From positions 434,001 to 498,000 of the forward strand of contig MU008189.1 of NCBI GenBank assembly GCA_010909165.1: a DNA stretch of 64,000 nt, read 5' to 3'. This DNA comes from Anthoceros angustus (lineage: Eukaryota; Plantae; Anthocerotophyta). This document shows, in pieces, positions 1 to 46,660 of this stretch (position 1 is the stretch's first letter; every line of letters starts with the position of its first letter). Position numbers and translations under genes: made by a program. The notes beneath the pieces are model-generated. The model saw only the letters and a program-made list of their open reading frames with translations. It had not been told where the DNA came from and did no database searches.

Positions 1-1890
1 ATTATGTTCAGACCTGCAGTCGTGTATTCATTTCCATGAAGTAAAACTCTCCCGTAAGAGTATCCACAATAAATTCCACTGTTCCTGCACTTTCATATCC
101 GACAGCCTGTTCAAAGAAACCAGAATCAAGGACGCGGCGTATCTTGCCTGCCAACAGCTACATACTGACAGAAGAGACACAACCAAAATGGAAGAAGGAG
201 GGTGACCTTTGCAGCGTCTACTGCCGCCTGACCAATCCTGTTGCGAAAATCTTCAGTGATGTGAGGCTGCATACAAGCTAAAGAAGCCTCTGTTAGACCA
301 AGTCACAGTTCAGTAACAATGTACTCAGACCACAACGAGTCTTCCCACCAACTCTCGAAAGGCGATCTCATACCGCTGGGGATTCCTCAATAATCTTTTG
401 ATGCCTCCTTTGAACGCTACAATCCCTTTCAAATAAGTGGACAACATTCCCATGCTTGTCCCCAAATATCTGAAACAACACACAATAAGGCTCTTTCAGC
501 TAGTGGCCTGTTGGCTGCTATCTCCTATCTCCAGATGCAGGTCAAACGGGTTGCCCCGCTGCAGCATTCAAGACCAAGTCCGACATTCACCAGGACCAGG
601 AATAAAATGAGTTTGACAGGGACTACCTGCACTTCAATGTGCCTTGGTTGAGACAGGTATTTCTCAATGAGAACGTGATCATTGCCAAAGGCAGATTTTG
701 CCTCACGTTGAGCTCCTGCTAAACTCTCCAAAAACTGGTCTGGATTAGGAACAATCCTCATCCCCTGAAAAATGAAGTATACGATGCATCAGAGTCAAAA
801 CCAAGACCCTACATTTGACTGTAAGCGGCCACCTCCTTTGCTCAACGTACTACAACATACCATATATGGTACCATAAGTGCATATACCTTTCCTCCACCG
901 CCCTGTGTGGCCTTGATCAGCACCGGATACCCAATCCTATCTGCCTCGCGCTTCAGGACTTCAGTGGTCTGATCGTCTCCATGGTATCCAGGCACAACAG
1001 GCACACCCGCAGCAGTCATCAAGCGCTTCGAGACACTGCACACCAAAAAAACCTTCAAAGAATTAACAGAGGTTATAAGAGCATCATAAAAGTGGGACCA
1101 TGATTGTGCATGTTTTCACCTCTTATCTCCCATGTCATTAATGGCAGATGAAGGCGGACCAATGAAGGAAATGCCCTGTTCCTTGCACTTCTCAGCAAAT
1201 TGCATGTTCTCGGAAAGGAACCCGTAACCTGGATGCACTGCCTGAACCAACATGAAATCCACAGCACGTCAGTGGAAAAGCAAACAACTTGGCAGATAAC
1301 TACGCAGATAACTACTCACAAGAGCGAGGCACCCTCACCTGTGCACCAGTCAATTTGGCTGCCGCAAGAATGGCGGAGCCATTGAGATAGCTTGCCGCGG
1401 CAGGAGCCGGGCCTATAAACACTGCCTCATCCGCCTCCCGCACGTGCATTGCCAACCTGTCCTGCTCACTGTACACGGCTACAGTCTTCACTCCCATCCT
1501 CTTGCAAGTCTTTATAACGCGGCATGCGATCTCACCCCGGTTGGCGATCAACAGTTTCTTGATCGGTCCCGCCTTAGGCACATCCAAGCCCCGACCAGAT
1601 CCAACTCCAAAATCCGCGACCCCGCGACCACTAGAGAAATCCTTCACACAGGGAAACCATCTCCCGGGCGCAACGAGCGGATGCAAATCGCGCAGCGAAA
1701 GCTGAGGACGATTCAGCTCAGCGACAACACACAGAGCCCGCACCAGAAAGCCACGAGAATCGAAAACTCGAGACCGGTCGCCTGCTCCACCACACGCTCC
1801 TATACACCGATATCCAGGAAACACAGAAACCACACCCGAACAAGAACGCTGCCCGCACAACACAAGGTGCAGAATTCTTTTGCGGCCCAT
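1..1890 (-). CDS. MCCA: 3-methylcrotonyl-CoA carboxylase alpha subunit (biotin carboxylase domain); multi-exon, 3' part runs off the left edge
   Basis: Spliced minus-strand exons encode [45 protein letters not shown]...[62 protein letters not shown] and [15 protein letters not shown] at 1890 has a strong context (caccATGG). Confidence 0.9.
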
Positions 1891-1978
1891 GGTGACAACG
1901 GCCTAGTCTCAGACAGCAAACGTTTACACCAAATTAACGCATCCACACCACACGCCTCCCGAGGCCCTCCTGCCTGCC

Positions 1979-2161
1979 CTACTTATTCAGCCCAATGCGC
2001 TGCGCGACCGAGGGCTTCAGCGGCTGCTCGTTGCACTGCAGAGACGCGGCCAGCTGCTGCTCCGAGGACATGCCCGCGGCTGTGGCGTTCCTGCGCGCCT
2101 CGTCGTACTCTTGCTTGTCCTCCGCCTTCAGCTCCAGCCGCGTAGGCTTCCGCCGCAACAT
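1979..2161 (-). CDS. CDC26: Anaphase-promoting complex subunit CDC26 (APC12), 60 aa, intronless
   Basis: MLRRKPTRLELKAEDKQEYDEARR...RIGLNK*. The N-terminal MLRRKPT-x-L/I-x-LK-x-ED motif is diagnostic of CDC26, and the C-terminal RIGL matches plant CDC26. It lies within the 1979..2458 ORF of the track. Confidence 0.9.
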   Translation of the reverse strand: MLRRKPTRLELKAEDKQEYDEARRNATAAGMSSEQQLAASLQCNEQPLKPSVAQRIGLNK

Positions 2162-2597
2162 CCTCCTCCTCCTCCTTCCCCTTCTCCCCGCAGCAAGCAC
2201 GCAGCCAAGGAACAAGGAACTAGGAACAACACGCCCAGCTGATGAGGCTGACGAGCTCTTGCCGTTGCCTTCCGTCAGCAGGCTCTCCACAAATATAGAG
2301 GCGAATGTGTATCCCGTTTCTGGAGTTTCGCTACAAATTCTCGATTCAGTGAAAAATACGATATATGCACTAAACCGGATGTGTACGGATATGAAGAAGA
2401 GCCACGTGGGCAGAGAGTGAAGTGGATCTCCACTTGGCTGCTTCTGCGCGTCTGCCACCGACGCTTACACATTTGGCATCGGCCTTGTGCGGTGACTGCA
2501 TTTCCAGCAGATCTCAAGCCTTGAGCTCTTCAGAGCTGCAAATCTCGTCTCCCTTCATTCGGTTTGGAAGACAGGAGTCTCATCCCGCCGTCCCACC
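2162..2597. promoter_or_regulatory. Short divergent intergenic region, probable bidirectional promoter (CDC26/MCCA vs catalase), with a G-box
   Basis: 436 nt separate the two divergent ATGs; gcCACGTGgg lies at about 2401-2410. Confidence 0.45.
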
Positions 2598-4901
2598 ATG
2601 GATCCCAAGGTGCAATCTGTTTCCGAATTCGAGGCTTCCATCTTGTGCAGATCTGAATCAAGCTCGGCTGAAGGATTGCCTGACAAGAGGAGTCTTTGCA
2701 GATGCGGCCTTCGAGTTCGCACAACTCGATGCATTTCACAACCAATCAAGGCGCGCCTGTGTGGAACAACAATTCCTCGCTCACCGTGGGCCCCAGAGGT
2801 GAGGCAATTGCAAGGAATCGTAGCTTGATGTGGAGAGGGAGTGGAGAAGGTTGTTGACGCTGGAGTGATTTGTGTTAAATTGTGAGGTTCGTGCAGGGCC
2901 GGTGTTGCTGGAGGATTACCACCTGGTGGAGAAGCTGGCGCAGTTTGATCGGGAGCGGATCCCGGAGAGAGTGGTGCACGCGCGGGGGTTCTCGGCCAAG
3001 GGATTCTTCGAGGTGACGCACGACGTGTCGCATCTCACGTGCGCGGATTTTCTGAGAGCGCCGGGCGTGCAGACCCCGCTCATCGTGCGCTTCTCCACCG
3101 TCATCCACGAGAGGGGGAGCCCGGAGACGTTGAGGGATCCCCGGGGCTTTGCGGTCAAGTTTTACACCAGGGAGGGTAATTTTGATATGGTTGGGAACAA
3201 CATTCCTGTGTTTTTCATCAGAGATGGGATTCAGGTACGTGTGAAGCTGGTTGTGGTTGGGTTTCGGGGCGGCGGTTGCGTGGTTGGTGCACTGGATTAC
3301 TGGTGGATGGATTGGATGTGCAGTTTCCGGAGATGATTCATGCCCTGAAGCCCAATCCAAGGACGCACATTCAGGAGAGCTGGAGGATAGTGGATTACTT
3401 CTCATTCGTGCCTGAGAGTTGCCACATGTTCACGTTTCTGTTTGATGACTGGGGTATTCCCGCTGATTTTAGGCACATGGAGGGCTTCGGTGTCCATACT
3501 TTTAAGGTAAGGGTGTGACGGTTATGGGGTGATGGAGGGACTGGTAGTGGGACCCGGAGAGACTTGTCGGTGCTCACGGCTTGGATGTGGGTCTGCAGTT
3601 GATCAATAGGGAGGGGAAGGAGACATATGTCAAGTTCCATTGGAAGCCGACCTGTGGGCTTAAGTTTCTACTGGACGATGAGGCCATTGTTGTTGGCGGA
3701 ACTAACCATAGCCATGCCACTAAAGATCTCTATGATTCCATTGCTGAGGGGAACTTCCCAGAGTGGAAGCTGTACATACAGACCATGGACCCAGCGACTG
3801 AGCATCAGTATGAGTTTGATCCACTCGACGATACCAAGACTTGGCCTGAAGACAGGTTTCCTTTGCAGGTATGTACATCTCTCAGCTGTCTCACGCATAT
3901 ACATGGCTGATCTCTTACATCATATACGTTGACTCTTGCGTGTATGTCTGTGTGTGTGGTACCAGCCAGTGGGGCGGATGGTTCTGAACAAGAACATAGA
4001 CAACTTCTTCCATGAGAACGAGCAGCTTGCTTTCTGCCCTGGGGTCATTGTGCCAGGCATCTATTACACGGACGACAAGATGTTTCAGACCAGGATTTTC
4101 TCCTACGCGGACACACAGCGTCACAGGCTGGGTCCGAATTATCTCATGCTACCAGTCAATGCTCCCAAGTGTCCTCATCACAACAATCACCATGAAGGGT
4201 TCATGAATTTCATGCATCGGGATGAGGAGGTAACGAAGGTTACACTCCCCTTTTGTTTGGAGGTTTCGGTATGGATTCCTGACTTGTATTTGTCCGGTAC
4301 AGGTGAACTACTTCCCGTCTCGATATGATCCAACTCGTCATGCACAACGGACCCCTGTACCGCGGAACCAAGTGTCAGGAGTTCGGGACAAGGTCGGAAG
4401 AGTCCTGTCCCAGTATCTGCAATGCGAAACCGTAAGAATGACGATCGTCTTTCGCTAAGTTCGGTTGTGCCCCTGCAGATCAACATAGAAAAGGAGAACA
4501 ACTTCCAGCAGCCCGGAGAACGATACCGCTCTTGGCCGAGCGACAGGTAATGACAAAACAGGCAGTTCGCGTTTTCCTCACGTTGGCTGAGGACAACAGT
4601 TGCCACCCAATGATACGTTTTGAATTTGGTTCCCACAGGCAGGACAGGTTCGTAGAACGCTGGGTGAAAGCTCTCTCGGATCCCAAAGTAACGCACGAGA
4701 TTCGGAGCATTTGGATCTCATACTGGACACAGGTAAGCAGTTTCACAGTGCATTCACTGCAACCCAGCAAATCTTCAGTCACAGCGCTGCTAGACCTGAT
4801 AGCTTGCACACTAACGTTTCTTCTCGCTTTCGATGAATCAGTGCGATAAGGGGCTGGGTCAAAAACTCACCTCCAGGTTGAATGTGAGATCCGCGATCTG
4901 A
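2598..4901 (+). CDS. CAT: Monofunctional heme catalase (plant type), multi-exon
   Basis: Micro-exon MDPK, then MRPSSSHNS...[32 protein letters not shown] (catalytic His), [13 protein letters not shown] and [14 protein letters not shown] (heme-ligand Tyr). The C-terminus is [17 protein letters not shown] introns. Confidence 0.97.
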
Positions 4902-5099: not shown

Positions 5100-8000
5100 C
5101 CCATGACCCCAACATCGGCGCGATCCGATCCTCCCATGGCATGCTCCATGCGCCATGCCCCATACCCTATGCCCTAAAGGCGCCCTAAGTCGCCGCGATG
5201 CGCTCATGTCTAAAACACTATACCGTACACCATGGGGTGGTTCCGTGGAAATGAAATAAAATTCTAATTTGCTAGAAATCAAAATAGATGCCAGAGGATC
5301 AGTGGTCGAAACACCAAGACCGCTGTGTCGGGAGAGGTCGAGGGAAAGGGGCCGCTGAAGCCGGCTTTTCTCACGGCGGTTTCGCTCAAGCCCGGAATCT
5401 GGGCACGGCGGTTTCCCTTGAGCCCCGGAATCTGGGCCCAGGCAAAAGTTCGGGGCCAGCGCGGGATAGAAGAAGAAGACGAGGGGAATAGAGGGAGTGG
5501 ATGGTGATGGGAATGGCGGTAGGACATGGAGCGTAGGAAATAGGCAATAGGATATAAGAAAAGAAAAGCAAGAAATAAGAAATCAAAACCTCGCGCAAGA
5601 TGGGGTGTATGACATTCAGGGTGTCATTTTGACCCGTCCCAAGCTCGGTCCCGGTCCCGGCATGTGTTAAAAAAAACATGGGACAGGAGGTTCTTTAGGA
5701 CTTTGGTCCTCACTCTCAGTCCCCTATTTTTTTCGGGGACCGAGGGTTCATAAAAGGTTCGGTTTAAAATTAATAAATTATTTAATTTTATATCTAAGAA
5801 TTTATATTTATTATGGACACATGGACCCATCTTATAATTGGTATGGTCATAAAGACACTTACCATGGATGTATGGGCTATGTCTTTATTTATCTAATACC
5901 ATCCATGGCCTATTAATATCGCCTTTATTCTATAAGATTTTATTAGCTTATTTTGATACATCTATAAAAAGTAGATATGTAATATTTTGCTTTGAATGTA
6001 GTTATTAATGTATACAATAATTTGTTGATATGCACGCTCATCCATGAAGATGGACTAAGATATGGTATCTCAACCATAGGCTTACACAGGACTCTTATCA
6101 TGCTATGAATAGACACCCTTCAAGAGTACATAAGGCCACAAAACTAGAATTTGGAGCATCACTCATTGTTGCTCTCCTCATTGTGGTGTGCTTGTTGTTC
6201 TTCTTTCTTGCTTTTTATTCTTCTTCCTTGCTCCTTGTTGTTCTTTCTTAGTAAGAGCTCTTCTTTTTTAGAGCTTATCTCTTTTTGAGCTCTTTAGGTT
6301 TAGAGTTCATTTTTGTTTGAGCTCATCTCTTTTTAAGCTCCTCCCTTTTAAAGCTTTGTTTTTTGGCTCTTCACTTGCTATATTAATTTTTTAAAAATTT
6401 GCGGTAAAGATGGCTCATTTTCTCAAAGTTCAAGATCCGGTTTTTGGAGGGCTCACGTGATGACCAAACAAGGAGTGGCGACAATAGCCAAACAAGCCAA
6501 CCGAGTCAAAAGAGACAAAAGGTAAAAGGCAAGAGTCTTCAAGGAAGAATGGAAGGTTGCATTTCATTGGGTGGAGTTGCTCAATCAATGGAGAATCGAA
6601 TGTTTTGTGTTGTTTGTGAAAAACATGGTCATGGTAGTGGGACAAGGGTCACACTCAAGCTTGGGTAAAAGCAGAATAACTTTAAGAGTGCATTGGAGGA
6701 CCATGCAAGGAGTACATATCATTTAGCATCAAGATGAAGAGCAAGCCAAGGCTCAACAACCAACTATGCAACGAACTTTGGAAATGCATTTTTCCAAAAG
6801 GATAAGGAGATTCTCAACTTGTTGAAGTTCGCTATTTCATTGCTAAGAAGGATTTGAGTTTCCATACGAGGACCTTTGAGAGTTCATGGGGATATTGGAG
6901 TGGAAGGCATTCCAGGTGAAGACATATGGTTCATATCTGAGATAGTGCTTGCAAAGAGCATGTGGTTCTCATAGCCAATTTTTTACGAACAATGTAAGAG
7001 AGGTTATGCAAGTCCATGGTATGATACTTATAGATGAGGATGCATAGATGGTGCAACACATAATTATTTTATGATATATGATAACGGAGTTTTGAAGCTA
7101 GCCAGCCAACAAGTGCACGCGGAAGGGATCTTCAACGCCTTGGTTGAGCAATTGCAACTCTTTTGATCGGACATCAAAAAGTGGATTTGCTATGGAGCAT
7201 CATGATTGGCGGGAGCCAAGGAGATCACAATGTGAAGTCATGAATGTGAATCCGTATTTTGCTCAAACTCATTGTGTTGCTCAACGGCGCTTGCAGAGAG
7301 GCAGATCCAAGGTTCCGACTTTGAGGGACAAGATTGTCAAGAAATTGCACGCTTTCATCATTCAAGTAAGAAGACTACGGCTGAATTGCAAGTGCAATTA
7401 GAAATGCAAGTCTTAATCATTGTGAATTCATGATGTCCGTTGGTTGTCTAGAGGTCAAGCCATAAGTAGAATAGTTTGTCTATTACCGACTTTACTTAAA
7501 TTTGCTCAAGAGGATGAGAGCCTAAATTGGCCAATAAGGGTCCAAGTAGTTCTTCTTTGCAAGACTATCTTCCAAGCTTTACTAACTACTAAGGCCTTGT
7601 TTTCATTTCACTTTTATCGATATTTTAGAGGTCCTTAATTCCTTGAATACTAACTTTCAACGTGATTATCCGGAGCCGCTTAGCATAGCTCCCTCATAGA
7701 TTCTATGTTGTTTGTGAAAAACATGGTCATGGTGTAGTGGGACAAGCTAATGCGACTCAAGCTTGGGTAAAAGTTGGCGTCGAACTTTCGGAAGAGTGCA
7801 TTGGAGGACCATGCAGGAGTACATATCATTTAGCGTCAAAAGATGGAGCAAGCCCAAGCCAAGGCTCAACAACCAACCATGCAACTTTGGAAATGCATTT
7901 TTCCAAAAGGATAAAGATTCTCAACTTGTTGAAGTTCGCTATTTCATTGCTAAGAAGGATTTGAGTTTCCATATACGAGGACCTTTGTGAGTTCATGGGG

Positions 8001-44072: not shown

Positions 44073-46660
44073 TCAAAAAGGAGTTTCAAAGCGAGCATAG
44101 CCCGATGGTGTTTGACATGTTTGATATGACTTTTCTTCTTCTTCTTCTCTGTACTCTAAGTCGGGTAATTTGAATCGATACCATTTTACCCAAAAAAAGA
44201 AGAAAGCAAAACTGGCAGCAAAGAGATGAAATCTAAACATCAATAAATCATAAATGTTCCTCATCAGCTCCTAATGTAGCTTTGCAAGGGTAGTTACCTC
44301 TTTCTATGCAAAATTTGCCAATACGTTCGCCCAAAGTTTGCTAAGTTTGGTGAAGGTTTTGTTGAATTTTAATTTAAAGTTTTTCTTCATTTCAGTGACA
44401 AAATTTGCTCGCTTTCGAGAGTATTAGCTAGGTACCCGCCTATCCTACAATGGGTATTAGGCTAGGCTATCTCTACAGCTACTCTATACCTTATCTTTAG
44501 CATAACTACATAATTTTGCAAAAGAATAGAGTACCTAAAGCTCGAGCCATGGGAGAGTATTATAAAGCTCTCAAAAATATATTCTACCGCACATGGTGAA
44601 ACACAAAGAATTACAGAATCTTTTCAAACATGTCAAACATTGTTGAGGGGATCGGCTCCATAGCCCAATCCTCACGAGTAATACTGTATACTTGGTTGCA
44701 CTCCTAGAGCATCTCCAAGTTCTCTAGCTACTCTCATTGATAAATATGATAAGATATGAACTTCACTATAATACATGTTCAAGCTCTGCTGAGAAGTAGG
44801 TAACTTACTACGAAGTATTTCTTGTAACCTCGCACTCTGGACAAATATTTGCATGTACCGAAAATCTATGCATGTATTCAACCTGATGTCCTTAATGGTT
44901 ATCTCAAATTCCCCATATTGTTTCCAAATCATTTTCTCTCCCCTTTTTCCAATTTCTTGATAATATCCTCTCCACTTGTGTATAGTCTTGAGCTTTACAG
45001 ACTTGATATTGTATTTCCCGGAAATAGTGGTAACCTCATTGCAGGAAGAATCAAAAGGAATGTTGCATTTCAGTTTCTCCAGCAAAGAGTTACAAACTGT
45101 AGATGAGATGCTTTTAATTCCATCATAATCATCAATAAAAAGTTCACTGTAGCTTGGCTTCAATGGTACTAGTCTACTTGTGAGTGACACTCTCATATCT
45201 AATGCACCACTTTCCCTTGCTAAATTCATATGAAGAGGGTTTCCTGCTGCCAGTTTCACTTGAAAGTCCTTGTTCATTTGAAAATTGGCAATAATCTCCT
45301 CTAAGGATAAGGCACCCTTCTGGACTTGAGAGACAATGAACAGAGTGTTACGCGCTCGATTACTGTTGATGTCATAATATTTCACCGACATCTTCCATGT
45401 TGCTATGCCATGTGGAGCAAAACCACCTTCTATTAAAAATGTACCAAGATTAAGGACCGCAGACTCTCGATGTAGTATAGGTGAAAGTGGCTTGATGGTT
45501 TGCAAGAATAAGCTATTTGCACAAGTCCCTGATTGCCATTGCTCTTTAAGTTGTGCTAGTGAAAGTGTGAGCATGTTTTCTTTCCTCCATTCATTCATAA
45601 TATGTAGATTCACATTTCTCTTTGAAAAAAAGAATTGTACCAACTGTACATTCAATTTTAAATGTGTCCAATATTCTTGAGACTCGGCTTTTGCATTTTT
45701 CACATGTTGTACAATATTCTCCAAAGCTTTTGAATGGGATAAACACCAATCTTCTACCATGATAGCTCGTCCATTCATGTAGCTCTTTTCTATATCATTT
45801 CCACATCTTCGTTCAATATTTTTTACATTGGTTCTCGTATTTGTCTGTTTTGATGTACCACTTCCCACATAGTAGAATACATCAAGTTCTCCAACATGGA
45901 TTGGGTTTTTCAATTTCTTCATCACAATAGATACTAAATATTCATGTAACCAATTGCCCTCTAGCAGTGGGCGAAAATTGAAAACAATATTTTCTTCAAC
46001 ATGACTAGATTGGAGACAAGTCATACTATACTCTATTTTTTTCTTCCGATCTTGGTGCCCACACATGATTTCCCACAAGATTTCTCTCATTTGAAAAGTC
46101 GCCATGCTTACGTTTCTATCGATATTTCCTCCAATAAAAATAATTCCGTTATCAACACAAATGATTACGTTTTTCCCATTCCGGATTTTAGGAAGGCTAA
46201 GATCACTACCATTGTCGAATCCAATAATAAGTCCATCCTTCAAAAAAGTGGGAAAATAAAGTTTCTCATGATATGGGTATCCACGTTGCATAATTATTGA
46301 TATTTTTCTAGACTGATAAAAGCTCAAAATAACAATACAAGTAAGTGAGAGAATTACACTACTGCGTTAAAAATTTTAAGAGGAGGTAGAAACCTTTTAT
46401 ACTTTTTACATTAAGGTTTAAAATATCTTGTAGATGCAAAATAGAATCTTCTAGAATAAAGAAGACAAAAATAGAAGTGAATCTTAAAATAAATATTATC
46501 CAACAGAATCTTCACAAGTACCTGATTGAAGCCCATTAATGGAGAATGAAATGTAAAACTTCTCTTCACTCCTTCGTGGAAGTTCAAAACTCAAAGAATG
46601 TTTTGGTCTCAAAGCGAAAAAATGAGTGGACACAACAAGAGGGATTCTTGTTGCAAAAAG
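44073..46660 (-). CDS. AT-rich orphan gene: 551-aa open exon (44672-46327) with probable flanking exons; multi-copy, partly degenerate
   Basis: A long stop-free frame in AT-rich DNA, GT-AG-bounded candidate exons upstream, and a downstream segment with TAG stops. Homologous copies lie at 30.2-32.9 kb. No recognisable domain. Confidence 0.6.

Follow-up and report, generated by a model that had tools for sequence, protein, structure and literature searches.

The minus strand at the beginning of the window, a stretch of 64,000 nt from Anthoceros angustus (contig MU008189.1) with a GC content of 50.4% (versus 49.6% reported for A. angustus in PMC7027989), carries two ORFs that do not overlap; both have a start and a stop of their own, and both code for a conserved protein. 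The first ORF (1979..2161) is intronless and encodes the APC/C subunit CDC26, a protein of 60 aa that runs from the ATG at 2161 to the TAG at 1981-1979. It matches the Pfam family PF10471 at 35 bits (cut-off, 24.5) and contains the MLRRKPTRLEL-type N-terminal segment that binds APC6. Its PDB matches are human and fission-yeast CDC26, with human residues 1-28 matched. CDC26 is preceded by a 5' leader (2162..2279, minus strand) without any ATG. The outer limit of this leader, 2279, marks where the matching transcript contig stops and does not represent a mapped TSS, and the contig of a relative aligns as far as 2302. MSA-like AACGG motifs near the start are not above chance in the window. Beyond the leader, a catalase gene is oriented head-to-head with CDC26 (2469-4700, plus strand), and its probable ATG at 2598 lies 437 nt from that of CDC26. 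The catalase gene is seen spliced in the runs of relatives; in run X1 it was not seen, and only a paralogue aligns. A G-box is located near 2405, between CDC26 and the catalase gene.

The second ORF is MCCA, all exons of which lie on the minus strand. The coding part of exon 1 (1339..1890) starts at the ATG at 1890 and comprises a basic N-terminal extension and the biotin carboxylase N domain, which Pfam places at residues 110-184. Intron 1 (1242-1338, GT-AG) separates it from exon 2 (1120..1241). Exon 3 (888..1035) and exon 4 (627..764) are covered by a transcript contig and by PDB matches, exon 5 (374..469) and exon 6 (207..266) by the transcript contig, and after exon 7 (14..106) the gene runs on past the window start. 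The six introns are of the GT-AG type and 84-157 nt long, and the frame is kept across the exons. The identity of MCCA was established by exon-by-exon PDB searches. For exon 3, the best five matches are all MCC alpha (57-61 bits, versus 40 for PCC), and the top match of exon 4 is also MCC alpha. PCC alpha was rejected as the identity on the basis of these two exons, exon 1 being non-discriminating since it puts PCC first by a small margin. In the diverged relative L001, the carboxylase gene carries a biotinyl domain with the EAMKME motif at its C-terminal end. The N-terminal extension of MCCA, of ~109 aa, is basic and poor in acidic residues (five R/K and no D/E in the first 30 aa), and may represent a putative mitochondrial presequence. 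A start further downstream was discarded, as there is no further in-frame ATG ahead of the catalytic domain in the window and MGRK is kept in L001. Moreover, L093, an unrelated plant MCCA, has an extension of 96 aa and no CDC26 in the 2.5 kb upstream. Given this similarly long extension in a gene without CDC26, the ATG at 1890 can reasonably be taken as the start, and the linkage of CDC26 with MCCA is specific to its lineage.

The two ORFs are separated by an exonic spacer of 88 nt (1891..1978, minus strand). This spacer is weakly structured (z +1.9) and folds worse than shuffled sequences, which led us to reject a structured, IRES-like element. It contains no AATAAA, and the only near-signals are AATAAG over the CDC26 stop and TGTAA at 1928. 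It also includes an ATG-CGT-TAA mini-ORF at 1942-1934 (minus strand) in a weak context, which was dismissed as a conserved element because a 1-nt deletion at 1937 alters it in three relatives. These features agree with the preliminary description of this DNA, which had placed the intact CDC26 ORF, the 88-nt spacer and the mini-ORF at the same positions, had noted the lack of an obvious poly(A) signal in the spacer, and had named MCCA as the downstream gene.

Transcript contigs connect both ORFs. The RNA nature of the runs was guessed, but the removal of introns shows that they originate from RNA. In run X1, which comes from the same sample, one contig of 3,157 nt covers 12-2279 with 0 mismatches and with all six introns removed. 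This contig is unbroken over 1338-2279, so that the leader, CDC26, the spacer and the MCCA start form a single exon. Another ~1,560 nt lie past the window start, which fits the remaining part of MCCA plus a 3' UTR. No other CDC26-like contig was found in X1 at a likeness of 82% or more. The same structure, at ~93-94% identity, appears in runs X2, X6 and X7, which come from different studies under three further organism labels. In addition, a second contig of X6, 80-85% identical, holds CDC26 and the spliced MCCA exons, separated by 748 letters of other sequence. The reading that we consider probable is a bicistronic CDC26-MCCA mRNA, a rearranged derivative of the CDC26-TTM3 arrangement of other green plants in which the partner is exchangeable.

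Two alternatives bear on these contigs. A CDC26-MCCA fusion protein, produced by stop readthrough, frameshifting or splicing, might be suggested by L001, where the two ATGs share the same frame. However, the ATGs are out of frame in the window, both species have additional stops after the CDC26 TAG, CDC26 contains no strong donor site, and no splice joint occurs within 1339-2279 in any run. We rejected the fusion on these grounds and regard it as extremely improbable. On the other hand, de Bruijn contigs merge overlapping transcripts and flatten depth, leaving single molecules and ends invisible; neither polyadenylation of CDC26 within exon 1 nor an MCCA TSS located in CDC26 or the spacer would show up in them. 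MCCA could then come from a shorter mRNA starting in CDC26 or the spacer, and CDC26 from a longer mRNA that either leaves MCCA untranslated or ends in MCCA exon 1, the assembler having merged these overlapping or nested products. The many intervening ATGs of L001, which would hamper cap-driven translation of MCCA, point in this direction, as do the many Arabidopsis readthrough transcripts that, according to PMC9768141, coexist with monocistronic ones. Nevertheless, such an arrangement requires a promoter within 271 nt, two-thirds of which are coding and whose spacer portion is unconserved, and a canonical poly(A) signal is absent. Moreover, five contigs from four organism labels are all unbroken through CDC26, and the known CDC26 locus is bicistronic. 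Hence, we deem nested transcripts unlikely and favor the bicistronic mRNA.

The closest homologue of CDC26 was found in L001, a genomic contig, with 55 of 60 aa identical (92%). The two CDC26 genes differ by 20 synonymous and 5 non-synonymous codons, and 57% of the four-fold sites differ between the window and L001 (JC 1.07 substitutions per site). In L001, CDC26 lies 135 nt ahead of a complete carboxylase gene starting with MGRKK. The spacer is unalignable (135 versus 88 nt) and the frame offset has changed, and no catalase gene was found in the 1.2 kb upstream of CDC26. Thus, the CDC26-MCCA pair has outlasted its gene neighborhood. The second X6 contig, with mismatch counts of 25/24/26/28 and an insert of 748, comes close to L001, for which the values are 27/26/29/29 and ~746. 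This contig therefore belongs to an L001-like lineage and provides RNA support there, and the colinearity of CDC26 and MCCA is kept in both. Synteny in relatives, a check suggested by the preliminary description, is preserved in L001 at ~1.07 substitutions per four-fold site, and CDC26 would have arrived in front of MCCA before the window species and L001 parted. The 92% conservation of CDC26 could also be expected of a regulatory conserved-peptide uORF, in which CDC26 controls MCCA by stalling ribosomes upon a metabolite signal; the uORF of CDC26 in Arabidopsis first appeared in a list of CPuORF candidates (PMC3426882). However, the same study treats the Arabidopsis locus separately, as a putative dicistronic transcript, and the conserved residues are those of the universal APC6-binding N terminus and of the C-terminal RIG motif, none of them partner-specific. 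We find peptide-mediated control very hard to credit, and the bicistronic reading is retained below.

In other green lineages, the gene that follows CDC26 is TTM3. It lies 170 nt after CDC26 in Marchantia, 264 nt in a second liverwort-like locus, 285 nt in an algal-like locus and 34-40 nt in angiosperm loci; in chlorophyte-like loci CDC26 is followed by a split TTM3. The land-plant TTM3 ORFs that we examined are intronless. In agreement with these loci, the CDC26-TTM3 arrangement has been reported for plants and green algae (PMC11892635, PMC7943633). By parsimony, CDC26-TTM3 is the ancestral state of green plants. TTM3 (CYTH) is absent from the window and from L001. Since it accompanies CDC26 in liverworts, flowering plants and chlorophytes, the CDC26-MCCA pair is best explained by a partner swap in the window lineage. 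We also considered that TTM3 had decayed in place between CDC26 and MCCA. No remnant was detected in the spacer (p 0.22-0.84) by a search that did detect the Sphagnum control, and the swap thus represents a relocation and not an in-place decay. In the Marchantia locus L009, a gene encoding ANAPC3 and TPR domains (6024-7766) is located head-to-head with CDC26-TTM3 at a distance of 234 nt; it is probably an APC/C TPR subunit and possibly has a promoter in common with the pair.

CDC26 does not always have an intact partner. In Sphagnum, a degenerate N-terminal TTM3 remnant (32% over 81 aa) persists 78 nt downstream of CDC26, which apparently reflects an ancestral bicistron losing its second cistron. 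Within the Sphagnum cluster (L005:6280-6864, L008:331-819, L010-L015), a spliced transcript-like contig continues to carry the remnant. In Ceratodon (L096:8001-8183), there is no annotated gene and no trace of TTM3 within 8 kb downstream of CDC26, and the same holds for 10 kb in the lycophyte Diphasiastrum (L003:10001-13275). These stand-alone CDC26 genes contradict a review statement that places plant CDC26 upstream of TTM3.

In other lineages, CDC26 was also found ahead of other ORFs. In 15 high-GC loci (L042, L043, L047, L048, L052, L054, L057-L059, L061, L066, L072, L078, L080 and L089), an LRR protein of ~370 aa is located at -4 to +39 nt from CDC26. The six copies tested are 52-78% identical; several loci show an ATGA overlap, and none of the six checked has an ATG between the ORFs. 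We regard the CDC26-LRR pair of these eukaryotes as a strong candidate bicistron that has not been described before. Three transcript-like contigs (L090-L092) carry a KH-domain protein 572 nt downstream of CDC26; in L090, CDC26 occupies 39-245 and the KH ORF, of 678 aa, 818-2854. Single contigs place an SLC35F gene 110 nt behind CDC26 (L017:303-1370) and a kinase-like ORF 188 nt behind it (L049:490-2001). In L087 (472-1110), a single short contig, an ORF with a gamma-butyrobetaine hydroxylase-like N domain begins 73 nt behind a CDC26 of the animal type.

Altogether, the architecture with CDC26 as first ORF recurs, yet it is not obligatory, as Ceratodon, Diphasiastrum and Sphagnum lack an intact partner. 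The earlier proposal that CDC26 kept its uORF position and acquired a different downstream cistron is supported by the spliced MCCA contig, by the pair in L001 and by TTM3 elsewhere. Its corollary, that selection acts on the bicistronic architecture rather than on TTM3, stands in part: several other partners argue that TTM3 is not what matters, but a need for the bicistron does not follow, given the stand-alone genes of Ceratodon and Diphasiastrum and the decay of TTM3 in Sphagnum. The same loci favor a neutral origin, compatible with a bicistronic mRNA, in which a rearrangement placed CDC26 and its promoter before MCCA, whose own promoter was then lost, so that two needed genes became locked together by one shared promoter. 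In line with this, we know of no functional tie between the APC/C and leucine catabolism. Hornwort genomes are also gene dense (PMC8075897). A neutral origin is, however, less readily reconciled with the presence of CDC26 as ORF1 before at least five unrelated ORFs across lineages, one of them in 15 loci at -4 to +39 nt, a recurrence that at first sight looks above chance. As stand-alone CDC26 is clearly viable, neutral lock-in stays a worthy rival to any benefit, and we hold it to be quite possible though not the outcome we expect. Conversely, CDC26 might be a recurrently re-hosted first cistron that settled independently in the leaders of long, mutually unrelated housekeeping ORFs (TTM3, MCCA, LRR, KH, SLC35F and kinase-like), because a translated downstream ORF stabilizes or doses the tiny subunit, with survival of the CDC26-MCCA mRNA from NMD hanging on translation of ORF2. 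We advance this generalization tentatively and with considerable doubt.

The best-known conserved bicistron of plants is CDC26-TTM3, described in Arabidopsis and green algae by Lorenzo-Orts et al. (2019), as cited in PMC6973038, PMC7943633 and PMC11892635. The locus studied here shares with it a CDC26 of 60-70 aa as first ORF with its own stop, a short spacer, and an unrelated metabolic enzyme in a strong start context. Unlike CDC26-TTM3, the partner is MCCA, a putatively organelle-targeted enzyme, and the CDC26 stop is followed by at least seven introns, whereas the land-plant TTM3 ORFs examined lack introns; the pair is known here from ORFs and contigs rather than from translation. The locus works like CDC26-TTM3 yet is no member of that class, because TTM3 is absent. 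Green algae possess exclusively bicistronic loci (PMC7896298, PMC11892635), with reported AUG depletion (PMC11892635) and median spacers of 40-183 nt (preprint PMC11291117). The CDC26-MCCA locus resembles them in its short ORF1 and long ORF2, in a spacer within the reported range, in the maintenance of colinearity and, as far as the +4 position goes, in an ORF2 context stronger than that of ORF1. It differs in belonging to a land plant, in the lack of AUG depletion in L001 and in being seen in contigs rather than by Iso-Seq or Ribo-seq. A further parallel is the HG8 twin-CX9C uORF, a small and widely conserved protein that has different main ORFs by taxon and is free in others (PMC3426882). 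Although the protein is different, CDC26 likewise is a small, widely conserved uORF protein with varying main ORFs that is free in some taxa. Partner swapping of this kind hence has a published precedent in HG8, and the principle is not new. A literature search that did not extend to most subscription journals found neither CDC26-MCCA nor the other partners of CDC26 described. In summary, the locus is real, old and probably bicistronic, and MCCA is probably a new partner for CDC26.

We envisage that the locus derives from a CDC26-TTM3 ancestor in which CDC26 lost its TTM3 neighbor and came to precede MCCA. A single RNA polymerase II unit would start ~120-300 nt upstream of CDC26. The candidate promoter interval (2280..2468) lies between the end of the CDC26-MCCA contig and the 5' end of catalase in relatives (2469-2473), and may be shared or back-to-back with catalase. 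The spliced mRNA would be ~3.2 kb long, a size at which the arrangement indeed appears as one contig, and its long first exon would comprise CDC26, the spacer and the MCCA start. Two separate proteins would be made from it. CDC26 would be translated by ordinary scanning to the first ATG, and MCCA by ribosomes that bypass this ATG and/or re-initiate past the CDC26 stop, a mixture being likely. The preliminary description had noted a CDC26 start context weaker than that of MCCA and had pointed to leaky scanning at bicistronic loci of green algae. The contexts do differ at +4, where CDC26 has a T, but this T is imposed by Leu2, which is invariant in CDC26. At -3, both starts have an A, and this position is a purine at both starts in the window and in L001. 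Furthermore, the AUG depletion upstream of ORF2 that marks leaky scanning in algae is absent from both: counting the CDC26 ATG, there are 3 ATGs up to the MCCA start in the window (3.5 expected) and 8 in L001 (5.25 expected). As the protein sequence imposes the difference in context, and as 7 ATGs separate the two starts in L001, leaky scanning is not established; for MCCA this route is weakly supported. The ORFs between the CDC26 and MCCA starts all end before the MCCA ATG in the window and in L001, a pattern equally compatible with re-initiation and with an extra internal TSS. Sixty codons are long for efficient re-initiation.

The CDC26 stop lies 640 nt ahead of the first of the MCCA introns. 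A stop upstream of exon junctions exposes an mRNA to NMD, and this position predicts that the mRNA should need translation of MCCA to withstand junction-triggered NMD. In Arabidopsis, the CDC26-TTM3 transcript rises in NMD mutants, and translation of TTM3 raises CDC26 (PMC11892635). By analogy, the likely benefit of the arrangement would be that a long, constitutively translated second ORF holds the mRNA of a tiny ORF1 on polysomes and off NMD.

A review describes CDC26-TTM3 as a plant-wide arrangement (PMC7943633), a view that suggests that polyphosphate metabolism and the cell cycle are functionally linked. The long-kept swap to MCCA, the decay of TTM3 in Sphagnum, the CDC26 genes that stand alone in a lycophyte and in other mosses, and the further eukaryotic partners all argue against such a link. 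In the series of CDC26 partners, nature provides a means to examine if a small protein profits from a second ORF, and the test is feasible since hornworts are transformable (PMC10952725). Gene callers would overlook CDC26 at this locus by treating it as 5' UTR of MCCA, and MCCA knockouts or promoter edits could yield cell-cycle phenotypes. Elsewhere in the window, a 564-codon open frame (44675-46366, minus strand) coincides with an AT-rich stretch (GC 0.37) that is unlike its surroundings.
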